From positions 248,001-312,000 of the IMG/VR virus record IMGVR_UViG_3300042868_005134: DNA of 64,000 nt; one strand, given 5' to 3'. Both the position numbers and the translations under genes were made by a program. Below are positions 2,681 to 15,970 of this stretch, piece after piece (positions within the stretch are counted from its first letter, which is position 1; each line of letters begins with the position of its first letter). The notes below the pieces were generated by a model, which was not told the origin of the DNA, searched no databases, and saw only the letters and a program-made list of their open reading frames with translations.

Positions 2681-3159
2681 GAAACCTCTGACTTGCCTTT
2701 GGCAATTGGAACTACGTTAATATAACCGGCACCTCTACTAGTGTCCAGACCTTCCTCGCCTAGCATGTTTCTAACAATGTCACGGAACCAACGATCTACA
2801 ATCTCTTCGTCCGGGTCACCATCGAAACCGTATCCAGCTTGTTTCAATTGTAACACAAAAAGTTCATTCCAGTCAAGCTCAAAGAAGCCATTACGGATAT
2901 TATCTTTGTTAACGTGCGTATCCAAAACACTTACCCACGGCTCGCCTTTGGCAGTAGCACGATCTTTTGGTGTCATCTTGGCAACGGCTTCTGCCTTCTG
3001 CGCTGCCTCGGCGGCATCGAGTGCGGTTTTAGCAATCTTGGCAGAATCTTCTGCGGCTTTTAATGACGCTTCTGCTTCCTCTTTAGCCTTGGCCTTTATC
3101 TTATCGATGCCGGTTAAGCGTTCAATTATGTCTGTTATTTTCCCCATCCGTTCCCCCAT
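2677..3159 (-). CDS. hypothetical phage protein
   Basis: ORF, ATGA-coupled to rnh. Confidence 0.7.
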   Translation of the reverse strand: MGERMGKITDIIERLTGIDKIKAKAKEEAEASLKAAEDSAKIAKTALDAAEAAQKAEAVAKMTPKDRATAKGEPWVSVLDTHVNKDNIRNGFFELDWNELFVLQLKQAGYGFDGDPDEEIVDRWFRDIVRNMLGEEGLDTSRGAGYINVVPIAKGKSEVS

Positions 3160-3995
3160 AAGTCTACGTGTAGTCTTGGGCTATAGTAATAGCCTCTTTT
3201 TAATGCTTCGTCGGCAATGTGTATACGATTACCATCATACACACTGACAACACCGCCCACAGGCATAACGTACACCGGTCCTACAAAACCTGCGTCACGA
3301 TATGCCATCACAGCTTGATCAACTTCGTCAAAGTGTTCTAACTGATCCACTACGAATTTCAAATATACAAAACCGTATTGTTGATAGTCTGCTACCACAT
3401 CGGGTTTAACAGCATCATTCCATTTTTCTCCGCTTGCGCTTAATTTAGGACTTACGCTAAATGTAATTTCTCTAAACGAGTGATACCAATTATCTAAAAA
3501 TGTTTTAAATTCTTCATGTAACGGCTGGGTACCGTTTGTTTCAAATGTTAGATTTTTTAAATCCTGCATTTTTGTATGATTCAGTAATGCGGGATATAAC
3601 TGTTGCCAGCCCAGCAAAGGCTCACCGCCTGTGATAACAAGATGTACATCGTTACCGTTGCTTTGTACCCAAGTATTTTTATTAGGTGTTAATCCCAGTA
3701 TCTTAGATACAATCTCGTCAATGGTATAATAAGGACTTAGTTCTTTGAATGCCGGATGCCAACTAGCATAGCTATCACAACCTGTGTTAACTAAGGGTAA
3801 TTGTTCAAATGTTTTGTAAAGGTGAACACTGTTAGCAATAGGTTCTACCTCGTTAGTTAGTTCGCCTTTAGGCATGCCAAATCCAGCACATTTAAAATTA
3901 CATCCGAATGTTCTTAAGAACACACTAGGTACACCAATAAATCTACCTTCGCCTTGTGCTGAATAAAATACCTCACTGATTTTTATCTTGTCCAT
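3135..3995 (-). CDS. queE: 7-carboxy-7-deazaguanine synthase (radical SAM)
   Basis: ISEVFYSAQGEG, VFLRTFGCNFKC...GCDS, VITGGEP, FETNG, VSPKL, PRLHVDLW; start trimmed to MDKIKI. Confidence 0.9.
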   Translation of the reverse strand: MDKIKISEVFYSAQGEGRFIGVPSVFLRTFGCNFKCAGFGMPKGELTNEVEPIANSVHLYKTFEQLPLVNTGCDSYASWHPAFKELSPYYTIDEIVSKILGLTPNKNTWVQSNGNDVHLVITGGEPLLGWQQLYPALLNHTKMQDLKNLTFETNGTQPLHEEFKTFLDNWYHSFREITFSVSPKLSASGEKWNDAVKPDVVADYQQYGFVYLKFVVDQLEHFDEVDQAVMAYRDAGFVGPVYVMPVGGVVSVYDGNRIHIADEALKRGYYYSPRLHVDLWGNGWGK

Positions 3996-4224
3996 CTTCT
4001 TTCTCTTTCTTAAATTCATTGTACGAAGTAGTAATACTATCCCATACTGCCCACTTAAACAACCAAGACAACAAGGATGTTAAACCTAATACTAGCAATA
4101 AAGCACCAATAATTCCAGGTAGTAGAAATCCTATAATAACAGAAGTCATAGCAATAACATAAACCTTTTGCCAAGGTTTCCATTTACTCCATTGCCATAC
4201 TACAAAATTGTAAACGTCTTTCAA
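3973..4224 (-). CDS. hypothetical membrane protein
   Basis: two hydrophobic segments. Confidence 0.7.
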   Translation of the reverse strand: MKDVYNFVVWQWSKWKPWQKVYVIAMTSVIIGFLLPGIIGALLLVLGLTSLLSWLFKWAVWDSITTSYNEFKKEKEDGQDKNQ

Positions 4225-5425: not shown

Positions 5426-5538
5426 TATATTTCCTTAATGTAGTATTGTGAAGCAGGGTATGTTTGTTGTAGCCATTCTAACAAGCCTTCTTCGACTGGC
5501 AAGCGAATGCTTTCAAACTTGTTTGTAATATATTTCAT
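5425..5538 (-). CDS. small hypothetical protein (37 aa, not in ORF track)
   Basis: MKYITNKFESIRLPVEEGLLEWLQQTYPASQYYIKEI; ATGA overlap with folE stop. Confidence 0.6.
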   Translation of the reverse strand: MKYITNKFESIRLPVEEGLLEWLQQTYPASQYYIKEI

Positions 5539-6281
5539 CGCGGAGCAAACTCCTGTTGCATCTTAATGTTGTCAAAGAATTCTTTCTTAGTACCCATGTC
5601 TGTATTAAATGCGCCTTTGAGTACTGTAGTCTGTGTCAATGAGCTATGTGCCATAATGCCACGATTCTCACAGCATCCGTGTGTGGCTTGAATATACACT
5701 GCTACGTTTTCTGATTCAGTAGCTTTGCTAATCTCACGGGCAATGTCGTTACAAAGTTCCTCCTGGAGAGTACCGCGTCGAGCACACCACTGAGCGATCC
5801 GTGTGTATTTCGAGAGACCAATAAGTTTATTAGCGGCAATGATACCGATGTAGGCAACCCCAGATACAGGCTGGTGATGATGAGAACACATACTTCGAAG
5901 TTCACTACGTACCACAAGCATACCTTCGTAACGGTCCTCTGAATCATTGGGAAATGCTGTTGCGTCTGGTGCTCTTTCATATCTTCCTGCCATAATTTCA
6001 TTAAAATACATTTTAGCAAGACGTCTTGCGGTGCCTTTACTGTTGGGATCATTCTCGCGATCAATTAGTAACTTATCTAAGATTTGTTCGAATGCCGGTG
6101 TTGCTTCGTCAATTAGTTTTTCTACGTCGCCTTCGTGTAGATAATCACTGATGTTATCGCCAGCCCAAAACCGTTTGTTATCACGTTTCATCTTAAAGCG
6201 AAGATGATCTCCTAGATATGCTTCTTGATAACCGCCATCACCTGCCATTGCGTCAAGTGCTGTTTCTTTTTTATCTGTCAT
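5535..6281 (-). CDS. folE: GTP cyclohydrolase I
   Basis: SMCSHHHQP, IGLSKYTR, LQEEL, HGCCENRG motifs. Confidence 0.93.
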   Translation of the reverse strand: MTDKKETALDAMAGDGGYQEAYLGDHLRFKMKRDNKRFWAGDNISDYLHEGDVEKLIDEATPAFEQILDKLLIDRENDPNSKGTARRLAKMYFNEIMAGRYERAPDATAFPNDSEDRYEGMLVVRSELRSMCSHHHQPVSGVAYIGIIAANKLIGLSKYTRIAQWCARRGTLQEELCNDIAREISKATESENVAVYIQATHGCCENRGIMAHSSLTQTTVLKGAFNTDMGTKKEFFDNIKMQQEFAPR

Positions 6282-6324: not shown

Positions 6325-6354
6325 AGTATACACTATTATTTAGGTTTTTGTCAA
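6325..6354 (-). promoter_or_regulatory. sigma70-type promoter TTGACA-18-TATACT with CTAAATA in spacer, upstream of folE
   Basis: -35 at 6349-6354, -10 at 6325-6330, TAAATA at 6337-6342. Confidence 0.7.
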
Positions 6355-7137
6355 CCTTAGTAATGTATTTTTCTTAACTGCTTCTTTCAAAACATTTAAA
6401 TTTATATCTAGTGTTTCTGCGTACTTTAATAAGGCACTAGTATCTTTGGGAAAACACATACCGCCGAATCCGTTGTACCCATCTGGACCCGGTACTTGGG
6501 TATGGCTGATGTTAATGCGATTGTCTTTGGCAACCATGCCTCGAATTCTATTCCAGTCATGACCTTGCGCTTTTGCCAATTGACACATCTCGTTCATAAA
6601 AACTACCTTGGTTGCTAGAAACGAATTAATAATATATTTTACCATGGCAGCTTCGCCAATAGTACAGAACACTGAATCTACATTTGGTTTGGTATATTTT
6701 ATAACACGTTCTGCTTCTCTTTGATAGGCCAGTGTGCTACCGCCAATAATAGCCCAGTTTTCTTTGGCATAATCCTGAGCAGCATTAGCGGCAGTTAAAA
6801 ATTCAGGCACATGTACTAGATTGGAATATTGGGTTTGTAAATATTCGTATACATTGGGAGTAGCTGTCACTTTTGAAATGATGACCCCTTTAAAGTTTTT
6901 TAAATTAGTCAACGTAGATACTAGGGGCAGAGTATTACAACTTCCATCATCATTCATGGGACTAGGTACACAAACAAACACAGCTTCGGCATCTGTTAAA
7001 TCAGCGTATGTGCTGTTAAAACCTTTACTAGGATCTGTATCGATAATTACCAGGTTGGCAAATCCTTCATAGTTGGAGGCAATAGCACTACCAACAAAGC
7101 CGCATCCCACGATACCAATTTTTGGCAGATCAAACAT
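6340..7137 (-). CDS. ugd: UDP-glucose/GDP-mannose dehydrogenase family protein (short form lacking C-terminal domain)
   Basis: GIVGCGFVG Rossmann, PEFL, KYIINSFLATKVVFMNE, GFGGMCFPKD catalytic Cys; start trimmed to MFDLPK. Confidence 0.85.
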   Translation of the reverse strand: MFDLPKIGIVGCGFVGSAIASNYEGFANLVIIDTDPSKGFNSTYADLTDAEAVFVCVPSPMNDDGSCNTLPLVSTLTNLKNFKGVIISKVTATPNVYEYLQTQYSNLVHVPEFLTAANAAQDYAKENWAIIGGSTLAYQREAERVIKYTKPNVDSVFCTIGEAAMVKYIINSFLATKVVFMNEMCQLAKAQGHDWNRIRGMVAKDNRINISHTQVPGPDGYNGFGGMCFPKDTSALLKYAETLDINLNVLKEAVKKNTLLRLTKT

Positions 7138-8353: not shown

Positions 8354-8831
8354 AGTCGCCTTTTATACGTTCAAAAGTTTTATATTTTTCCAAAGCATTG
8401 ATATATTCATCAAACAGTTTCTTTAGCTTAGGATGCTTCTTCTCTAGTATAACATCTCTTTCAGGAATACACAAGACTTTTTCGATTGTGTTTAACCGTT
8501 CTTCTAAATCTCTATCATTTATAACAACTTTGCCTTTGACAGTTAAAGTTGCATCTTTTTCCAAAACAATTTCGTCTTTGCCAGATGGCACAGTCATAAT
8601 AGGTTTGCCATTGCTATTATTAAATTGAGTGCTTGAATTAGTCCAACTAGTACCATTCAATCCGCTTGTTAAAAACTGACCACTGCTGCCACCACCTAGA
8701 CTTGTATTATTAGTAGTATAAACTGTTCCAACTGTTAGTGGTGTTGTAGCAAGTGGTATTGTACCGTAGCCAACACTCACTGTACTGCCAACAAACCCAT
8801 TACTGACGACGTTGTTCAAGGTATTGCTCAT
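8346..8831 (-). CDS. hypothetical protein (S/T/G-rich N-terminus, helical C-terminus)
   Basis: coupled ORF. Confidence 0.7.
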   Translation of the reverse strand: MSNTLNNVVSNGFVGSTVSVGYGTIPLATTPLTVGTVYTTNNTSLGGGSSGQFLTSGLNGTSWTNSSTQFNNSNGKPIMTVPSGKDEIVLEKDATLTVKGKVVINDRDLEERLNTIEKVLCIPERDVILEKKHPKLKKLFDEYINALEKYKTFERIKGDYD

Positions 8832-9279
8832 TGTGTATCCATTTGTTCTTTACAAGAAAGCCCCATTCTCTTTTTTGTGGTCCTGGCATAAACAATGTCC
8901 ACGCCGTTATATTAGGATCAAGCTCAATGCGATGATATGATGTGGCTTTACAAATACGGAAATGTCCAGGCCCCCGCCACTTTGCTATCTCAGTTATCTT
9001 TCGACCGTCTGAATTAAATTGTGGAATCCATTCCCAATAGCCGCCTGACAGTATTAAAGTAAAATAAGGCCATGGATGATCATGTACGTCATCGGGATCC
9101 GATTTAAGAAACTTGTGTAGAAACACATTAAAGGGAAAACGGTTTCTGTCTTTAAGGAAGATATAATAACGTTCGAGATATGGCTCTTCACTAACTCTGT
9201 CCATAATAATTCTTTTTCTGTCATGCTGTTCTAACCAAGCAAAAAACTTATTCTTTATCTTTTGGATTATCATAATCAT
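8800..9279 (-). CDS. cupin-like metal-binding protein
   Basis: VHDHPW...GGYWE...HRIEL (HxH..E..H pattern). Confidence 0.6.
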   Translation of the reverse strand: MIMIIQKIKNKFFAWLEQHDRKRIIMDRVSEEPYLERYYIFLKDRNRFPFNVFLHKFLKSDPDDVHDHPWPYFTLILSGGYWEWIPQFNSDGRKITEIAKWRGPGHFRICKATSYHRIELDPNITAWTLFMPGPQKREWGFLVKNKWIHNEQYLEQRRQ

Positions 9280-9637
9280 CCTTTACAAGTGTATACACTG
9301 TTCGAAAATTTCTTAATGCGATTTCTAGTCCAGGATACTGTTTGCACATATTTTGAACACGTTGCCAGTCCGGAAACAAGTCTACAAATTCTACAGAGCT
9401 TCCCCAACTAATTTGATAATCGGTGTTAAGTGTAATAGTATCGCTAGATAACGTTGTATATGTAACCCCACTTCCACTGCCAGTTATTGATATAGTGTTC
9501 ATATTTGTATCAATATAATAACCAGACGATGCGTGTAAATCAGAAGGTAACTCTATAGTAAACGTGTCTCCCAATGCTATAAAAGACTCAGTTGGCAAGT
9601 CGCTTAATAAGTTCTGTTGCTGAGAAGAATTGCTCAT
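9248..9637 (-). CDS. hypothetical protein
   Basis: coupled ORF. Confidence 0.65.
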   Translation of the reverse strand: MSNSSQQQNLLSDLPTESFIALGDTFTIELPSDLHASSGYYIDTNMNTISITGSGSGVTYTTLSSDTITLNTDYQISWGSSVEFVDLFPDWQRVQNMCKQYPGLEIALRNFRTVYTLVKDDYDNPKDKE

Positions 9638-10688
9638 GTAATACCTCTGTTTGTTTTTTTAATTGTGGCAAAAACTGTTCGTAATGATTCATATACTGTA
9701 TGATTTTATTACACACTGAAGGTCTTGCGAAGTCGTATGCTTCAAAACTTTCAGTCCACTCACTAGGATACTTGAATGTGTCAAATGCCATCTCGCTGTA
9801 GCTTAATCTATCCGGCACCATAGGAATGGCACCTACCACAGCACCTTCGTACCAGCTAATGCCCAGCGTCTCTTGAAGATTTGCACTAAACACTATTTTA
9901 GCACGACCTAACAGTTTGTGATATTCATGTTTGTCTAGTTGCTGATCTTGACAAACGACAAATTCGTATTGAGGTAGGTGCGTAGCCAAGTCACGAAAAA
10001 TGTCAACTTGCTTCTCCGGAGCAATGCGATGAGGAAACAAAATTAGATCACGCTTGGGCGTAGTCCAGTAGTTGTCCAAAGTATCTTGCATATACTCCAT
10101 GGGCCAGCCTGTTCGCACAATCTTTCCATCGGTAATTAAATCAGACTTATCCTCTTCGTGCCACGGATTTTCTGTTTTATAACCATCTTCTAATAAGTTA
10201 TCTACAAACATATCAATATGGAACTTGGTAGCAAAATAGTTGTGATCAAATGCGTGGAAAAAACTCTTCTCAGCATGTCTTACCCATTTCCTCTTACCAA
10301 CAAGACGTCCTAAAAAATCTTGTGGATCATATGATCCAGCATGCCATAAACCATGTGTAACTACCGGAATGCCCAGCAGTTCACTCATGTATTTGAGATT
10401 GATGACGCCAGGGTGCCAAGCATCAGTAAATATAAAATGATCACCAGGGCTAACTGATCCGGAGCAAAATAAGCGACCCATCTGCTCCACTTGACTAGCC
10501 TTGTATATATTAGTGCCGCCAAAGTTGAGAAATGCGCCAGGAGTGGTAGCACTAGGAATGTCCGTAGGACCTGATATAATGTTGACATTGTGTCCTGCCT
10601 TTCGTAAGAGAGCAGGTACATGGCGCTTCCATTGCCCCGTGTACCTTGTCTCTACTGCTTCTAGATCAACGAGAAAAACTTTGCTCAT
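9588..10688 (-). CDS. GT-B glycosyltransferase (GT4-like)
   Basis: ILFPHRIAPEKQ and ETLGISWYE (ExxGxxxxE) motifs; real start MSKVFL at 10688. Confidence 0.75.
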   Translation of the reverse strand: MSKVFLVDLEAVETRYTGQWKRHVPALLRKAGHNVNIISGPTDIPSATTPGAFLNFGGTNIYKASQVEQMGRLFCSGSVSPGDHFIFTDAWHPGVINLKYMSELLGIPVVTHGLWHAGSYDPQDFLGRLVGKRKWVRHAEKSFFHAFDHNYFATKFHIDMFVDNLLEDGYKTENPWHEEDKSDLITDGKIVRTGWPMEYMQDTLDNYWTTPKRDLILFPHRIAPEKQVDIFRDLATHLPQYEFVVCQDQQLDKHEYHKLLGRAKIVFSANLQETLGISWYEGAVVGAIPMVPDRLSYSEMAFDTFKYPSEWTESFEAYDFARPSVCNKIIQYMNHYEQFLPQLKKQTEVLHEQFFSATELIKRLAN

Positions 10689-10953
10689 TGCGTGGACCGC
10701 GATAGTTGTTATTTCCACCGCTTCGATTAAATTCGCCACGCGGCTTGCGAGTACCATCCCATGGCTTCTTTGGACGAGTACTGTAATAGAAATTGTTCCA
10801 AATTTGACTATTACGATTGTAAAGATTTGCCTCGTTAAAGTCACACATCTCGAAACGACAAAAATCGTGAAACTTTTCCAAGTCGTCGAAAATTTTAACA
10901 ATATCAGGACGGTTTTCTAAGTAGTTAACGTCTTTGTAATTATTCTTAGCCAT
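10666..10953 (-). CDS. hypothetical protein with basic G/N/R-rich tail
   Basis: start trimmed to MAKNNY, GGAAAG SD-like. Confidence 0.65.
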   Translation of the reverse strand: MAKNNYKDVNYLENRPDIVKIFDDLEKFHDFCRFEMCDFNEANLYNRNSQIWNNFYYSTRPKKPWDGTRKPRGEFNRSGGNNNYRGPRNEQSFSR

Positions 10954-10966
10954 TATAGCTTTCCTT

Positions 10967-11362
10967 TTAATACTTAATAAATGAACCATTTTCTCCGTCT
11001 TCGGAGACTTCAATCCAAACCTCACGGTCGGGATACCTTTGTGAGACTTGAGCGTGTAAATCATCGCTCATCATTTCGCAACTTTTGTAATCTAGCGACA
11101 AAACACCTTGTGTGCTAGAATACAGTTTTTCAAGCCATCGCTTGAATTGTATAAATTCCACATCTCTGTCATTGTGGGTGACACTAAGCCATACCCTAAA
11201 ATGAAAAATATGGCGATGAGGATTAGCCAAAAACGAAACATCATATTCATCTCCTGTTGCTAAGTTTGGATCTGTTGCGGCTGCTGGATATTTGTGAATA
11301 CCTTCTTTACGAAAGGTTACCCAAATCATTTTGTTAGGTCTAATATCTTGTTTAATAATCAT
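10967..11362 (-). CDS. QueD-like T-fold protein with LxxxHRHxF motif (DpdL-like candidate)
   Basis: FLANPHRHIFHFRV, DRDVEF, SCEM, VSEDGENG; HRH in place of QueD CxxxHGH. Confidence 0.7.
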   Translation of the reverse strand: MIIKQDIRPNKMIWVTFRKEGIHKYPAAATDPNLATGDEYDVSFLANPHRHIFHFRVWLSVTHNDRDVEFIQFKRWLEKLYSSTQGVLSLDYKSCEMMSDDLHAQVSQRYPDREVWIEVSEDGENGSFIKY

Positions 11363-11583
11363 TCTTTTCTGAACCTTGGAGTTAAAATCTCTGCATCAAC
11401 TTTATTTAAAAATTGACAATTTTCTAATCTTACTAACAGTTCATCTAACGAACCAGTATGATCTTCAACTATAACTCTAATTGGTTTAGTAGTGTCTGTT
11501 CTGTCTTCTAGAATGTATGTTAGTTTTCCATTTGCAGCTAAAATTTGCTCGCTGAAATATTCTTGTAAATTAATTAAATTCAT
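11359..11583 (-). CDS. hypothetical protein
   Basis: start trimmed to MNLINL (ATGA overlap). Confidence 0.6.
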   Translation of the reverse strand: MNLINLQEYFSEQILAANGKLTYILEDRTDTTKPIRVIVEDHTGSLDELLVRLENCQFLNKVDAEILTPRFRKE

Positions 11584-12098
11584 GTTGGTGTATCCTGTGT
11601 ATATTGATCCCAATAGGTAAATTTGTCTTTACTCATTAGGCTTTGTAGGTGATGAGTCCATACGCCAGGGTTAGTAGCACCCCAAGTACGATCATCTAGT
11701 TTGAGTGTTGCGTTATAGTTAAGTTGACTAATGTAAGGCAACTTTACACTAATCATAGGAATAAACCTATCTTGTTCGCAGTAACCGCTTTCGATTACGC
11801 CTTCAATATGTTCTACACCGAAGTCTAAAGCGACCCAGTAATTTTCTTTAAGACATCCGAGTATAACTGTATCCCATACCGCATATTCTTCTTGTGTCAT
11901 TGCTTTTGGATTGAAGCTCTGACTAGTACCAAAATAAATTTGCTTAATGTCGATGTCTCTGTTTGCTTGTTGTAGTATTTCCTCTAAAGGAGGAGTGCCA
12001 ACAACAAACAAAGTTTTCATACCATAAGCAATAGTATGCTCGACCTCATACCCTGTAAAGTAAACAACATTCTGTCGTTCTTCAGTGTTTAGTCCCAT
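11580..12098 (-). CDS. hypothetical protein inside the modification cluster (172 aa)
   Basis: globular-looking ORF coupled to MDR gene; no motif recognised. Confidence 0.75.
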   Translation of the reverse strand: MGLNTEERQNVVYFTGYEVEHTIAYGMKTLFVVGTPPLEEILQQANRDIDIKQIYFGTSQSFNPKAMTQEEYAVWDTVILGCLKENYWVALDFGVEHIEGVIESGYCEQDRFIPMISVKLPYISQLNYNATLKLDDRTWGATNPGVWTHHLQSLMSKDKFTYWDQYTQDTPT

Positions 12099-12970
12099 TT
12101 AATATAACCTCTGCTGTAACCGCTTGGACGATCCATACCATCCGCAAACGCTTGCTGCCATTCAGTGTTACGATTGTAACACTTTGTCCAGAAACTATCA
12201 ACCTCAAGATAGCCGTTTTCAATCATGAACACTGCTTCTTTCATACATTGGAAAAATCCATCAGTGCGTGGACTTGGCCGAACTGTAGTACAGGCTTTCC
12301 AAAGTTGAGCTTGAGCTTCCTCACGACTAACTGCTTTGCCAACACCGTCAATAATAAGGGCATTGTTATTTAGGTTGATGTCTATACCTAACGCATATTT
12401 GCCACTCAAGTCGATAACTATATCATAACTTTCGCTAGTACCAATCAATAGTTTATCACCCCACAGTTCCGTATTGCTAGACCCTAGTACATTGATGTCT
12501 TGTTTGCGTAATATCAATCTGTGATAAGCAACCCACGCAAGGAATCCACTACCAATAATCAATATCTTGCCATTTCTTTTATTAATTTCGCCTGCGGCTT
12601 GTTCCACTACATTGATACCGCAAGCAACCGGTTCTAGTATATAGCGAGGATGTGCTTCGGGTACTAGGACATACTCTTTAGATCTTACATTATAAATATC
12701 TGCGTATGCGGGTTCGCCTCGGGTGGCAACAAAGTCTCCAAAGTTGACGTCTTTAATATTAGCACCAATTCCAATAACTTGTCCAAGTCCTTCGTGCCCT
12801 TGCATGTGTAAAGGTAACGGCCCAAAGTCTCCTACCATCATGTCGATATCACTACGACATACACCAGTCATAACACTTCGAACACAAATTTCATCTTCAG
12901 TTAACGGATCTACATGAAATTCGATTTCAGTAAAACTACCATTGCCTGTTGTTTGTAAAATTCTATTCAT
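12089..12970 (-). CDS. zinc-dependent MDR-family dehydrogenase
   Basis: GVCRSD, GHEGLG, LEPVAC, IIGSGFLA; structural-Zn 4-Cys lobe absent. Confidence 0.85.
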   Translation of the reverse strand: MNRILQTTGNGSFTEIEFHVDPLTEDEICVRSVMTGVCRSDIDMMVGDFGPLPLHMQGHEGLGQVIGIGANIKDVNFGDFVATRGEPAYADIYNVRSKEYVLVPEAHPRYILEPVACGINVVEQAAGEINKRNGKILIIGSGFLAWVAYHRLILRKQDINVLGSSNTELWGDKLLIGTSESYDIVIDLSGKYALGIDINLNNNALIIDGVGKAVSREEAQAQLWKACTTVRPSPRTDGFFQCMKEAVFMIENGYLEVDSFWTKCYNRNTEWQQAFADGMDRPSGYSRGYIKWD

Positions 12971-13842
12971 AGTTTTTCTATTTGTTCGTGAATCCACATA
13001 TCTTGCTGATATTGATTGTTCCAGAACTCATTATTATTTAGGTTTTTAACAGCAGTCTCTACCATAGTTTTGTAGGCAGATTCTGGACACAATCCTAGCT
13101 CATGTCTTATGGCACTATTTCTCATGCTAAACGCAATACTACTGTCGTCATGATCTAGATTAGTTTTCCAGTTGGCACTTAGTATCCACGTAATGTTCTT
13201 ATTCTCGAATTCTAAATGACAAAAGTCGTCTACGTCATACGTGCCGGTATGATTGACTACACCGTAATCTGTACTGTCAATATCTTCTAGTTTATAGTTT
13301 TGAAGTGATTGTGCTTTAAGTTTAACACCATGTTTATAGTCTGTTAACGCACAATAGTAACTAAGCATATGAGGAATTAAGTCTCTGCTAACTCCGCCAA
13401 ATGCTAATTCTTTTGTAGTAAACCAACTACCGGGTTGTGGAATACGATTAGCGTTATTCCAACGAACATATACTCGTTCGCTTTGATCAGCTTGACTTTT
13501 GAATAGTTTAATCTCGTCTCTGTACTGATTATTTTTAACCATCATGAAACGTGTGTCGGGAAAGTCTTCTACTAGACAGAACCAACACTTGGCATCTTGT
13601 ACACCTGGCTTTTCAATTAGAACAATTTTACACTTGTTAGCAATAGTTCTTGCTACCAGTTCATGTGTAAAATTTGGTGTACAAATAACGACAATATCAT
13701 ATTCGCCTGTGACAATATCAGCAGTTTTAAATGTTGCGTTCTTTTCCGGATTAGAATCCACAGTATCGATTTCATAGCCGAGGCCGGTGAATACGGAATG
13801 ATATAGTTGTCCTATACCCATTCCTACAATTAAGGCCTTCAT
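12967..13842 (-). CDS. Gfo/Idh/MocA-family oxidoreductase
   Basis: ALIVGMGIG, ICTPNFTH, LIEKPG, GGVSRDLIPH. Confidence 0.85.
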   Translation of the reverse strand: MKALIVGMGIGQLYHSVFTGLGYEIDTVDSNPEKNATFKTADIVTGEYDIVVICTPNFTHELVARTIANKCKIVLIEKPGVQDAKCWFCLVEDFPDTRFMMVKNNQYRDEIKLFKSQADQSERVYVRWNNANRIPQPGSWFTTKELAFGGVSRDLIPHMLSYYCALTDYKHGVKLKAQSLQNYKLEDIDSTDYGVVNHTGTYDVDDFCHLEFENKNITWILSANWKTNLDHDDSSIAFSMRNSAIRHELGLCPESAYKTMVETAVKNLNNNEFWNNQYQQDMWIHEQIEKL

Positions 13843-14090
13843 TCTTTTTTACTTTCTTCGTATTGTTTAAACAATCTAGTAACCGGTTCCATTCGTTCTT
13901 GGAACACATCCGGCGCACCTATGGCCGCACGTTCTAAATCCCATTCACTAGGGAAATGTCGCAAGATACTATATGCTTCTCCGCGAACTTTTTTAGGAAC
14001 TCTAGGATAGTCTTTGGTATTGTGGGCTATATCCTGTAAGAATCTCTTGGCCCACATTACGGAACGATATCTTTCATCTGGTAATGTCAT
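13839..14090 (-). CDS. hypothetical phage protein
   Basis: coupled ORF MTLPDERYRS...LRHFP. Confidence 0.75.
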   Translation of the reverse strand: MTLPDERYRSVMWAKRFLQDIAHNTKDYPRVPKKVRGEAYSILRHFPSEWDLERAAIGAPDVFQERMEPVTRLFKQYEESKKE

Positions 14091-15783
14091 GATGTATTTC
14101 GTTTTCTAGTTGATCTAGTTTGTCAATTTGGTCTTCGGCAAATTCGCCATCTTCACTTGATTGTACACTCTCTTCATCTTCTTCGTCAAATAGATTGGCA
14201 AAGTGTGTGCTAGCATTAACTGTTTTTTTACCAATAGCGCCCCGTGTTCCTGGAATAGCTTGCCAAAATTTATCAAAGCCGTCAATGATAGCATCAGCTG
14301 TTGCTCTATCAGGCGCACTAAAAATAGCATCCACTACGTCTTTAAAGTATACACGTTCGAATCTTTCATCTACTAGCATGGCAGGACATAGACCAGCATC
14401 ATACTGTCGATTAGCTTCTTGTACACTATTCAAATGTAGCCACACATTATGACCCATCATAATTGCGTATGTGAAACTATCCCACGATGTTTTACCTTCT
14501 TTACCTATCTTATTTAGGTCGCCTGGTCCGTAGATACAAATATCTTTAACTTGTACGCCATCCATCAAGGGGCTGGTAGTAAACGATTTAAAGTGTCCAT
14601 CTTGTACAACAACATCCTGAAACAATCTAGTATCTTTACTATACTTCTTATTGTCTAAACTAGGCAACATGCGATATAACCATTTTTGTCTATCTACAAT
14701 TTCAGTTTGTACATAAATCTGTCCGTTGGCAGTGGCAAGGAACGGACTGGCACAGTCAAAGCTGATTGTAAACTTGGGATTGTGGTACTTACGAACAGCA
14801 CGTTGAATGTCTGTCAGCAGTAATGCCCACTCTAATTTACTTGTACCCAAGAAGTGCATCCAGTCTTGATGACCTTCTTCTAGTAATCCATCAAACTTTA
14901 GAGCTACTAGTCTGCGTAGAACTAAATCTACGTCACACATATTCTGTCCACCCATAGCCCAGCCATTAAACGGTCTTTCATATTTTGTTGGATCGCAGAA
15001 GTCTTTCATTTGTTGATACCAATCTTCTGCCTGTGCGTGATTCTCACCTTGTAGAACGTTTAAGAACTTACAAGCACCTGTACGATGTTTGATAAAGTAT
15101 TCATTGTTGTATTTGGTAGCGGCAACAGCTTGTTCATAACTAGCAATGCCACTGTTCTTGGCACCCACTGGACTGCGTCCAACCCATGCTGGAATATCAA
15201 GTACCATGCCGTAATCCATTAAGGCATCCATCCAAGCTAATACTTGTTCACGTTTCTTTTGTGCCGCATCTAGTTTTGCTTGAAAAAGTTTAACATGGTC
15301 AATTTTAGTATACTTGACATTTCCGTTCTTGTCTGTTTTAGGATCACCAGTTGGGTGTAATTGTGGAACAAGTTCAACACCCTTGGCAACTGCTTCTGCC
15401 ATGCGTTGTGCTACTTCCTCACCTACTGGATCGTTCCATTCACCTTCCCACACGCCTTTACCAATTTGGAAACCTCCAGAGTCGCCTAATACCCAACTAG
15501 TTGAGCGATCTCTATTGCGAAACATATCTTCGCTTGGATCTGGCTTAGTCAAGTCTAAGTTAGCGTGTCCAGCTGAATACAAACAATGGTCAAAGTAAAA
15601 TGTCGCATTGGGATTCAAATAGTTCATGGCTTCAATGCCTAGTGGTCCAAAGCTGGCAGGTATGCGAGCAGGGTCTACATAGTTATTGTAGCGTTGCTTT
15701 CCGATATACGTACTATAAAAGCCAGATGTTGCCGGCAAAAAGTAGGCATAATCATTTTGATGTGCGGTTAAATTTTTATTCAT
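14074..15783 (-). CDS. dpdA: TGT-fold 7-deazaguanine DNA transglycosylase (DpdA-like)
   Basis: LGDSGGFQ, MVLDIP, LNVLQG, GWAMGG, MHFLG, SFDCASP motifs; no tRNA-TGT CxCxxC Zn site; linked to folE/queE. Confidence 0.8.
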   Translation of the reverse strand: MNKNLTAHQNDYAYFLPATSGFYSTYIGKQRYNNYVDPARIPASFGPLGIEAMNYLNPNATFYFDHCLYSAGHANLDLTKPDPSEDMFRNRDRSTSWVLGDSGGFQIGKGVWEGEWNDPVGEEVAQRMAEAVAKGVELVPQLHPTGDPKTDKNGNVKYTKIDHVKLFQAKLDAAQKKREQVLAWMDALMDYGMVLDIPAWVGRSPVGAKNSGIASYEQAVAATKYNNEYFIKHRTGACKFLNVLQGENHAQAEDWYQQMKDFCDPTKYERPFNGWAMGGQNMCDVDLVLRRLVALKFDGLLEEGHQDWMHFLGTSKLEWALLLTDIQRAVRKYHNPKFTISFDCASPFLATANGQIYVQTEIVDRQKWLYRMLPSLDNKKYSKDTRLFQDVVVQDGHFKSFTTSPLMDGVQVKDICIYGPGDLNKIGKEGKTSWDSFTYAIMMGHNVWLHLNSVQEANRQYDAGLCPAMLVDERFERVYFKDVVDAIFSAPDRATADAIIDGFDKFWQAIPGTRGAIGKKTVNASTHFANLFDEEDEESVQSSEDGEFAEDQIDKLDQLENEIHHDITR

Positions 15784-15970
15784 CTGTTAAGTAATCGTTA
15801 TGCTCTTCGATCCTCCAAATATGGATGTTTTGAGGTACGTTGCCTTTCTTCTCAACGTACCCAATCCTAACATCCACATTTAATGTTCCAAGATCGGACA
15901 TAAGCTCATTAACTTCTTTTACAAGGTCCTTGAGCTTAATGACTTTTGACTTTACATTGTCGTCTTTCAT
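15776..15970 (-). CDS. hypothetical protein
   Basis: coupled ORF. Confidence 0.65.
   Translation of the reverse strand: MKDDNVKSKVIKLKDLVKEVNELMSDLGTLNVDVRIGYVEKKGNVPQNIHIWRIEEHNDYLTDE

Follow-up and report, generated by a model that had tools for sequence, protein, structure and literature searches.

A pair of coupled dehydrogenase genes in a lake-water jumbo phage belongs to a small family, seen only on phage-like contigs, whose members were found together with a glycosyltransferase and 7-deazaguanine DNA-modification genes. This association suggests that these phages place a remodelled sugar on a modified guanine, a DNA modification for which our literature searches found no report. The locus lies in a 64,000-nucleotide stretch of IMG/VR record IMGVR_UViG_3300042868_005134 (here the window). 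On the minus strand, a Gfo/Idh/MocA-family gene (12967-13842, 291 amino acids [aa]) is followed by a short zinc-type medium-chain dehydrogenase/reductase (MDR) gene (12089-12970, 293 aa from the ATG that relatives also use; the longest open reading frame [ORF] extends to a GTG at 12997). The plus strand reads tcat at 12967-12970, which is ATGA on the coding strand, so that the Gfo stop overlaps the MDR start.

The original prediction described an ATGA-coupled MDR and Gfo/Idh/MocA pair directly downstream of dpdA, and this observation was confirmed. The same ATGA overlap joins Gfo to the preceding small ORF, o83, at 13839-13842, while the MDR gene and the following ORF, o172, overlap by 10 nt and o83 overlaps the ORF upstream of it, o569, by 17 nt, so the whole block is one tight operon, in which the T-fold gene and a GT4 glycosyltransferase gene also lie. 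The placement downstream of dpdA is right in substance, since o569 is a TGT/DpdA-like gene. The T-fold gene that was said to bound the pair on the other side is not immediately next to it, because o172 and another small ORF, o84, lie between. These are real genes and not chance ORFs: 2640 database proteins match the MDR, and its AlphaFold model has a pLDDT of 96.7.

We next asked whether the two proteins carry the hallmarks of their families. Pfam assigns ADH_N, the GroES-like N-terminal catalytic domain, to the MDR at 35.8 bits (cut-off 23.5), it matches phrog_2640, and PDB profile hits cover residues 5-100. The zinc ligands named in the original prediction are present: C38 in GVCRSD, H59-E60 in GHE, and E113-P114 with C117 in EPVAC. 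Of these, C38, H59, E60, P114 and C117 are each conserved in at least 90% of 57 family members. The coenzyme domain carries the glycine loop IIGSGFLA, in which G140 and G142 are invariant; the Rossmann domain is trimmed and Pfam ADH_zinc_N is not hit, yet the model aligns over its full length with MDR structures. As also predicted, the structural-zinc lobe is absent. Only 15 residues, with no Cys, separate GDFVAT from EYVLVPE, there is no CxxCxxC cluster, and the protein is about 55 residues shorter than its structural neighbours. Some MDR branches also lack this lobe, so superfamily membership stands. The family has its own signatures, PSPR and a YxRGYIxW C terminus. In a Foldseek search, the model was closest to polyol and sugar dehydrogenases (threonine, sorbitol, galactitol-1-P, glucose, including archaeal glucose dehydrogenase, and arabinitol dehydrogenases, and the ribulose-5-P reductase TarJ), with TM scores of 0.72 to 0.82, and it shares with this branch zinc ligands of the Cys-His-Glu plus EP type.

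The Gfo protein matches PF01408, the N-terminal Rossmann domain, at 27 bits (cut-off 24) and has GxGxG, Asp29 at the end of beta-2, TPNxxH, EKP and Asp154-x3-His158, motifs that are conserved in 10 of 11 lineages. G7, G9 and G11 are nearly invariant, as are K78, the catalytic Lys, and P79 of IEKPG, which are lost only in the PA5oct type, and D154 and H158 are invariant. The C-terminal domain model PF22725 scores 21.4 bits, below its cut-off of 27. The best solved relatives of the Gfo profile are DgpA (7xr9, E value of 1.4e-9 over residues 40-234), DgpA2 (9m37) and levoglucosan dehydrogenase (6a3f). DgpA and DgpA2 are C-glycoside 3''-oxidoreductases of gut bacteria, and these enzymes oxidise a sugar hydroxyl on a glycoside and not on a nucleotide sugar. 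The phage protein is only distantly related to them and shorter (257-297 aa against 360-410). DgpA works with a C-C lyase to remove the sugar, while here the partner is a zinc MDR in the context of a glycosyltransferase and deazaguanine genes.

The neighbouring genes, all on the minus strand, point to a 7-deazaguanine pathway. o569 (14074-15783, 569 aa) is a TGT/DpdA-like protein and the presumed DNA guanine transglycosylase. It has no hit to the family models PF01702 and PF23859 at E values up to 10 for any of 11 members, none in the genome scan, and no PDB sequence hit. It nevertheless carries the motifs GDSGGFQ, LNVLQG, GWAMGG and HFLGTS, which match the catalytic-Asp motif DSGG[FY]Q and the downstream QG, GG and LG barrel motifs of the TGT/DpdA family, are invariant in 11 sequences and which hhalign lines up with the TGT-like protein of phage ACP17 (E value of 0.0033, but a probability of only 9.7%). 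In addition, 21 of 30 named Atlas feature neighbours are TGT clusters, with TGT clusters at 0.93 and a DpdA cluster at 0.88. The T-fold gene (10967-11362; phrog_17812) encodes a DpdL-family protein, the proposed 7-carboxy-7-deazaguanine (CDG) decarboxylase. Its LANPHRHIF matches the LxxxHRHxF signature that replaces the QueD motif CxxxHGH (Cui et al. 2023), and tblastn hits the DpdL proteins of ACP17 and of Cellulophaga phage phiST (E value of 4e-9 for phiST). The window also encodes FolE, GTP cyclohydrolase I (5535-6281; PF01227 at 136.5 bits), and a QueE-like protein (3135-4019, 294 aa) with 30% identity to the annotated PA5oct QueE (E value of 4e-26) but no Pfam hit at E values up to 0.01. 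QueD is encoded elsewhere in the genome, and QueC is absent.

Immediately after the MDR gene, o172 (11580-12098) is a conserved partner with homologues in PA5oct and ACP17. Sequence searches of the PDB and of Atlas features gave no usable hit for it. Its AlphaFold model (pLDDT 83) has a predicted QueE-like partial-barrel fold with no Fe-S cysteine motif. This resemblance is weak: it rests on VIA-align hits to QueE structures 5tgs, 6nhl and 4njg at Z scores of 6.1 to 6.8 and on a QueE cluster as the best named Atlas shape neighbour (TM 0.59), whereas Foldseek gave nothing at E values up to 0.001.

Two further genes are consistent with sugar chemistry. The first (9588-10700; GT370) encodes a GT4-type glycosyltransferase (GT) with the EX7E motif of the GT-B C-terminal domain of retaining GT4 enzymes, in which E277 is nearly invariant and E285 is invariant. 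The window protein reaches only 12.7 bits on PF00534 (Glycos_transf_1) and has weak GT4 hits in the PDB, but the family member in L128, one of the distant loci described below, reaches 37 bits (cut-off 26.4). The second (6340-7137) encodes a truncated UDP-glucose/GDP-mannose-dehydrogenase-like (Ugd-like) protein of about 265 aa (PF00984 at 73.8 bits and PF03721 at 36.4 bits). It has the N-terminal and central domains and the GGxCxxKD motif but no C-terminal UDP-binding domain.

To explore how the pair is distributed, we searched for relatives at several depths. Megablast of the locus against cultured phages found nothing, and a word-based protein search with the MDR returned only near-identical lake-phage proteins (the best 120 were all at least 76% identical), which said nothing about distant kin. 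An exhaustive search of representative sequences showed that the MDR family is small, with 402 representatives at an E value of 1e-3 or below and 57 at 1e-30. In every distant relative with readable flanks, at only 27 to 31% MDR identity, Gfo precedes MDR directly beside the same GT family, usually beside DpdL. The gene orders were DpdL, NTP_transferase (a sugar-1-phosphate nucleotidyltransferase), Gfo, MDR, GT; QueD, QueE, FolE, an unknown ORF, DpdL, GT, Gfo, MDR and, after three unassigned ORFs, an SDR epimerase/dehydratase and an RGP-family mutase; DpdL, GT, Gfo, MDR, o569-like; DpdL, Gfo, MDR, GT; and Gfo, MDR, GT. One contig has an MDR with lost ligands and no called gene with a Gfo family hit.

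Scans seeded with o172 gave a complementary view. The scan of viral contigs was flooded by close relatives, and a scan of genome contigs added five more distant loci, all on phage-like contigs in MAGs. Among the o172-seeded loci, 72 have both genes of the pair, 10 have neither, and none has only one. A copy or paralogue of the Ugd-like gene is present in 40 of the 72 loci with the pair and in 0 of the 10 without. Gene order in phage replication modules is partly inherited, so synteny within the close clade carries little weight. The pair is an accessory cassette: it is absent from some relatives, and in two it lies about 100 kb from the cluster, beside a cupin, radical-SAM and 2OG-oxygenase genes. 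Where the pair has moved, the two genes move together, and these relocated copies led us to reject the idea that the pair is strictly tied to dpdA.

Among cultured phages the distribution is nested, with DpdL in 29 records, the full-length GT in 17, all of which also carry DpdL, and Gfo plus MDR in 11. The GT lies in or next to the deazaguanine gene cluster, usually within 3 kb of DpdL, in ACP17, PA5oct, Phosso, X1, BUDD and BCSR5. One possibility raised beforehand was that homologues would prove to be scattered among phages without dpdA or the GT. This was not the case, as they were found only in genomes or contigs that also carry the GT and 7-deazaguanine genes.

The interpretation offered with the original prediction, that the pair makes an unusual NDP-sugar or tailors the inserted base, is partly supported. 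Comparative genomics favours the sugar option, but base tailoring is not excluded, and no activity, substrate or DNA product has been shown. The view that such metabolic enzymes are unexpected at this position is softened by the recurrence of the arrangement in many phages. Our preferred explanation, held with about even confidence, is that the pair is a two-enzyme sugar-tailoring module that serves the neighbouring GT inside a 7-deazaguanine DNA-hypermodification pathway. What sequence and context show is that the phage encodes FolE, QueD, a QueE-like protein, DpdL and a TGT/DpdA-like protein and lacks QueC, the gene set proposed to give 7-deazaguanine in DNA. The remainder is inferred, including zinc binding and catalysis by the pair and base exchange on DNA by o569. 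The GT would add a sugar to this base, either as a free base before insertion or once it is in DNA. The Gfo enzyme, probably NAD+ dependent because it has Asp at the end of beta-2, would oxidise one sugar hydroxyl to a ketone. The zinc MDR, probably NADPH dependent because it has Gly-Ser-Ser-Asn where NAD enzymes have Asp, would then reduce that ketone to give an epimer or otherwise altered sugar. These cofactor preferences are inferred from motifs only, and the structural and sequence matches cannot resolve the substrate, which may be the NDP-sugar donor or the sugar already attached to the base. The function would be to diversify the DNA decoration so that it escapes host nucleases that recognise modified DNA.

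Two further observations support this view. PA5oct resists several restriction enzymes in a pattern that suggests modified G. In addition, the genome has no ThyA-type hydroxymethylase that could supply a pyrimidine acceptor, and for this reason we rejected a role for the GT on a hydroxymethyl-pyrimidine. On the other hand, there is no biochemical or mass-spectrometric evidence for any sugar on a 7-deazaguanine, a base that has no hydroxyl group and thus no identified acceptor atom. PA5oct-type copies have also lost GxGxG and EKP in Gfo and Cys38 and His59 in the MDR, yet they are retained next to o172. A more far-reaching version, which is not excluded but which we consider unlikely, is that these phages insert or build a glycosylated 7-deazaguanine whose sugar might be attached through the nucleophilic C7 or the exocyclic N2, and that the pair then epimerises or otherwise remodels it through a keto intermediate. 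This would be a third layer of guanine hypermodification (deaza base, sugar, tailored sugar) with lineage-specific sugar chemistry, which would parallel the sugar diversity on hydroxymethylcytosine in T-even phages but use entirely different enzymes.

Other explanations appear less likely. The pair could act on the pterin or deazapurine skeleton, for example by reducing a carbonyl on a CPH4- or CDG-derived intermediate together with o172 and DpdL, so that DpdA inserts a new 7-substituted deazaguanine and the GT is unrelated to the pair. In line with this, the pair lies between the DpdA-like gene and o172/DpdL and is translationally coupled to both sides, and in PA5oct-type phages it stays with o172 while the GT and DpdL sit 25 kb away. 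Cui et al. could not reconstitute 2'-deoxy-7-deazaguanine (dDG) with DpdL and DpdA alone and suggested that enzymes are missing. However, in distant lineages the invariant neighbour of the pair is the GT and not o172, of which no homologue was found in the distant loci L127-L134, and the nearest solved relatives act on sugars, polyols and glycosides. MDR and Gfo enzymes reduce ketones and aldehydes, not the carboxylate of CDG, and no activating enzyme of the QueC type is present. We regard this reading as unlikely.

Also unlikely, though slightly less so, is a glycan module unrelated to DNA, in which the GT, Gfo, MDR and Ugd-like enzymes make and transfer a sugar to a protein or envelope target, such as in virion glycosylation or host surface remodelling, and their position among deazaguanine genes is inherited gene order. 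GT4 and NDP-sugar enzymes in phages often serve capsid or cell-surface glycosylation, and both the relocated pairs and the lack of an obvious acceptor hydroxyl on 7-deazaguanine fit such a role. Against it, the GT keeps its place in or next to the deazaguanine cluster in at least six otherwise rearranged phage lineages (those named above, and several metagenomic lineages), and no MDR family member was seen outside such a context. It is very unlikely that the proteins are merely non-catalytic or scaffolding partners of o172 or of the modification machinery. The degenerate PA5oct-type copies and two further MDR clusters that lack the ligands (P0178 and P0179) are compatible with this idea, but every catalytic and cofactor motif is conserved in the window, in 10 of 11 Gfo lineages and in at least 90% of 57 MDR sequences, which is not expected without catalysis.

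The inferred relay resembles that of IolG (NAD+) and IolW (NADPH), which convert myo- to scyllo-inositol by passing a keto intermediate between two dehydrogenases with opposite cofactor preference to invert one carbinol centre. Both Iol enzymes are Gfo family members and act on free cyclitols, while the phage pair mixes the Gfo and MDR folds. The deazaguanine gene set is shared with phiST, but phiST has no GT, Gfo, MDR or o172 homologue by tblastn, and the TGT-like protein of the window is a much larger, very divergent form. The concept of a base modification followed by a phage glycosyltransferase, with lineage-specific variation of the sugar as counter-defence, is shared with T-even hydroxymethylcytosine glucosylation (alpha- and beta-glucosyltransferases, arabinosyl variants). 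The modified base and the GT family are different, however, and dedicated sugar-tailoring dehydrogenases are not part of the T4 system.

7-Deazaguanine DNA modifications are a major phage counter-defence; eight derivatives are known, and none carries a sugar. Our literature searches found no mention of the enzymes described here. A GT nested within DpdL-bearing phages, together with a dedicated Gfo-MDR pair nested within the GT-bearing ones, leads to the testable prediction that this chemistry is extended by a sugar, and the cultured phages ACP17, X1 and Phosso carry parts of the set or, in PA5oct, the whole of it. The analysis also nominates o172 and the GT as candidates for the missing enzymes that blocked reconstitution of the DpdL pathway. 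New DNA sugars would matter for restriction evasion, for recognition by type IV and END-type nucleases, for sequencing artefacts and for enzymatic DNA labelling tools.

Metatranscriptome contigs from lake water cover parts of o569, o83, Gfo and o172, but none covers the middle of the MDR gene (12206-12809) at 90% likeness or more; because an RNA library can also contain DNA, we do not count this as proof of expression. Of the small genes in the block, o83 (13839-14090) belongs to the BPSL0761 family (NF041728 at 65.6 bits) and is present in 40 of the 72 loci that have the pair. o84 (11359-11613) has no family hit and is found only in the closest relatives. At the end of the block, o159 (8800-9279) is conserved, and its only match is a PHROG annotated as cysteine dioxygenase (phrog_4786, E value of 9e-37).

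The window occupies bases 248001-312000 of a single 383,411-bp virus contig, and near-identical DNA is present in at least 20 lake-water metagenome runs. All window genes discussed here are on the minus strand. We first asked whether the two dehydrogenase ORFs are genuine, and found that they are real and lie where the original prediction had placed them. The Gfo/Idh/MocA gene spans 12967-13842 and the MDR gene spans 12089-12970, and the plus strand reads tcat at 12967-12970, so that stop and start overlap as ATGA. The same overlap joins a small upstream gene, o83 (13839-14090), to Gfo at 13839-13842. The MDR gene overlaps the downstream gene, o172, by 10 nt, and o83 is overlapped by 17 nt by o569, which encodes a 569-amino-acid protein, making the block from o569 to the T-fold gene dpdL one tight operon. 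The product of o83 is a BPSL0761-family protein (NF041728, 65.6 bits), which is present in 40 of 72 loci that have the pair. Lake-water metatranscriptome assemblies contain contigs that are 90-99% like parts of o569, o83, Gfo, and o172 (window 11300-15800), mostly from related strains, although none covers the middle of the MDR gene (12206-12809).

Pfam places the MDR in ADH_N (35.8 bits) and its partner in GFO_IDH_MocA (27 bits), with both scores above the curated cutoffs. The MDR has the predicted catalytic zinc ligands C38 (GVCRSD), H59-E60 (GHE), and E113-P114 with C117 (EPVAC), and it has no four-cysteine lobe after GDFVAT. These features, like the coupling of the two genes, are as originally described, and the observation is confirmed. 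An AlphaFold model of the MDR, built with a 57-sequence alignment, has a pLDDT of 96.7. Foldseek aligned this model over its whole length with MDR structures at TM 0.72-0.82, and the top of the list is dominated by polyol and sugar enzymes (YdjJ, butanediol, threonine, galactitol-1-phosphate, sorbitol, glucose, and arabinitol dehydrogenases and TarJ). A profile search with the Gfo protein identified DgpA (7xr9) as its best solved relative (E 1.4e-9, residues 40-234), followed by other Gfo enzymes including DgpA2 and levoglucosan dehydrogenase.

We next examined the genes that surround the pair. The o569 protein has no match in Pfam, NCBIfam, or PDB sequence searches, yet it carries the motifs GDSGGFQ, LNVLQG, GWAMGG, and HFLGTS, which are invariant in 11 relatives. 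Using hhalign, these motifs line up with the TGT-like protein of Acidovorax phage ACP17. Among its named Atlas feature neighbors, 21 of 30 are TGT clusters (0.93), and a DpdA cluster scores 0.88. The 131-amino-acid T-fold protein carries LANPHRHIF, which is the LxxxHRHxF signature that Cui et al. give for DpdL, the proposed 7-carboxy-7-deazaguanine decarboxylase, and it hits the DpdL of phiST and ACP17. The genome also has FolE (window 5535-6281), QueD (outside the window), and a QueE-like gene (window 3135-4019, 30% identical to the PA5oct QueE), while searches of the genome found no QueC and no ThyA. This is the gene set that Cui et al. link to 2'-deoxy-7-deazaguanine. The block additionally holds a GT4-type glycosyltransferase (GT) with a conserved EX7E motif, as well as a truncated UDP-glucose/GDP-mannose-dehydrogenase-like protein (6340-7137) that keeps the catalytic GGxCxxKD motif but ends before the UDP-binding domain. 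A copy of this last gene, or a 34-39% identical paralog, is in 40 of 72 loci that have the Gfo-MDR pair and in none of the 10 that lack it.

The o172 protein (11580-12098) folds in silico with a pLDDT of 83 into a QueE-like partial barrel. Its best named structural neighbors in two independent libraries are QueE proteins (Z 6.1-6.8 and TM 0.59), but these scores are weak and the protein has no Fe-S cysteine motif. Its N-terminal YFTGYEVEH...TLFVVG recalls the QueE QGEG...FxR motif. It travels with the DpdA-like gene and DpdL, including in ACP17, where its homolog lies between FolE and the TGT-like gene, making it a candidate for the "missing enzyme" of the DpdL pathway.

To determine how consistently the pair is maintained among close relatives, we examined 85 loci seeded with o172 and not with the pair itself. 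Of these, 72 have both genes between o569 and o172, 10 have neither, none has only one, and 3 are cut at the contig edge. Two of the records without the pair at this position carry both genes together about 100 kb away, still in the order Gfo then MDR, beside a cupin, radical-SAM genes, and a 2OG oxygenase. In one of these records (G001; locus L118, 7906-8364 on the minus strand and neighboring genes), the relocated pair is followed by a cupin, a radical-SAM protein, and a 2OG-Fe(II) oxygenase. One MAG, whose phage-like locus lies on a 335-kb contig, has no MDR at all. In six close-relative loci (L066, L070, L071, L074, L106, and L113), o172, DpdL, and the GT are 68-95% identical to those of the window, yet the o569 form (at about 8400-9950) is only 39-40% identical. 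The transglycosylase gene seems to have been swapped as a cassette in exactly the loci that lack the pair at this position.

Among cultured phages, only the Pseudomonas PA5oct group (Wroclawvirus) has the pair, which lies there as Gfo-MDR-o172 at 30, 35, and 42% identity. An o569 homolog, the GT, DpdL, and QueE cluster 25 kb upstream. PA5oct resists several restriction enzymes, and the authors of published work on PA5oct infer a modified G. The GT family itself lies in or next to the deazaguanine gene cluster, usually within 3 kb of DpdL, in ACP17, PA5oct, Phosso, X1, BUDD, and BCSR5, and in X1 it lies directly upstream of an annotated queuine tRNA-ribosyltransferase. The distribution in cultured phages is nested, with 29 records carrying DpdL, 17 carrying the full-length GT (all of them also with DpdL), and 11 carrying the pair.

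To extend this comparison to distant relatives, we performed an exhaustive search of representative proteins, which shows that the MDR family is small (402 representatives at E<=1e-3 and 57 at 1e-30) and has its own PSPR and YxRGYIxW signatures. Distant members (27-31% identity) with readable flanks show five gene orders. In one lineage (locus L128), the order is DpdL, a sugar-1-phosphate nucleotidyltransferase (1442-2140), Gfo, MDR, and GT, with FolE on the same contig. In another (locus L130), it is QueD, radical-SAM QueE, FolE, an unknown ORF, DpdL, GT, Gfo, MDR, a 503-amino-acid protein, an MJ0330_N-domain protein and a small ORF, and then an SDR NDP-sugar epimerase/dehydratase and an RGP-family protein (12280-14246). 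The RGP family is that of UDP-arabinopyranose mutase, which hints at a pentofuranose donor in that lineage. The remaining orders are DpdL, GT, Gfo, MDR, and an o569-like protein; DpdL, Gfo, MDR, and GT; and Gfo, MDR, and GT. A scattering of homologs among phages without dpdA or the GT, which had been set beforehand as an outcome that would count against the proposed role, is therefore not what we observed.

The conserved neighbor of the pair is the GT. In the genomes and contigs examined, the GT occurs without the pair, but the pair never occurs without the GT. The simplest reading is that the pair tailors the sugar that the GT handles. The Gfo protein keeps GxGxG, an Asp at the end of beta-2, TPNxxH, EKP, and Asp-x3-His in 10 of 11 lineages, while the MDR has Gly-Ser-Ser-Asn where NAD-dependent MDRs have Asp. 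From established specificity rules, we infer NAD+ for Gfo and NADPH for the MDR, which fits an oxidize-then-reduce relay through a keto sugar. Whereas the motifs, gene orders, and distributions are directly observed, the cofactor preferences, the relay, and any activity on a sugar are inferred from sequence and context alone. The substrate could be either the NDP-sugar or the sugar already on the base, attached through an acceptor atom of the deazapurine that these data do not resolve. The nucleotidyltransferase and SDR/RGP neighbors point to the NDP-sugar level, while the kinship with DgpA and levoglucosan dehydrogenase, and a Ugd-like enzyme without a UDP domain, point to a glycoside.

Some findings weigh against this reading. 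The PA5oct-type copies (locus L001, 8108-10385; MK797984.1, 250869-253146; EST35_0362-0364) have lost the Gfo glycine loop and EKP, as well as MDR C38 and H59. They nevertheless stay conserved and adjacent to the o172 homolog, so they may be pseudoenzymes. Two further MDR clusters lack the ligands, and one of these sits after a 508-amino-acid gene with no called gene carrying a Gfo family hit. The pair can also sit far from the deazaguanine cluster. Our literature searches found no report of a glycosylated deazaguanine, and Cui et al. do not mention a glycosyltransferase, sugar, or dehydrogenase. The original prediction had proposed that the pair either makes an unusual NDP-sugar or tailors the inserted base, and this interpretation is partly supported, with the sugar branch favored but only about as likely as not to be correct. 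In this view, an uncharacterized tailoring pair, seen only on phage-like contigs, lies inside a system of a kind already known and predicts a kind of DNA modification that has not been described.

Other features of these genomes also emerged from the comparison. On the contig of one of the MDR clusters (P0178), a TnpB-like gene (Cas12f1-like_TNB) sits upstream of the presumed transglycosylase (the 508-amino-acid gene), about 120 bp downstream of a 243-amino-acid unannotated gene, and the DNA polymerase on the same contig carries an intein. Outside the window, the phage genome under study holds 14 radical-SAM ORFs of 321-477 amino acids (contig positions 220,000-237,000 and 359,000-367,000; loci L021-L028), 12 of which are packed into about 17 kb just upstream of the window.
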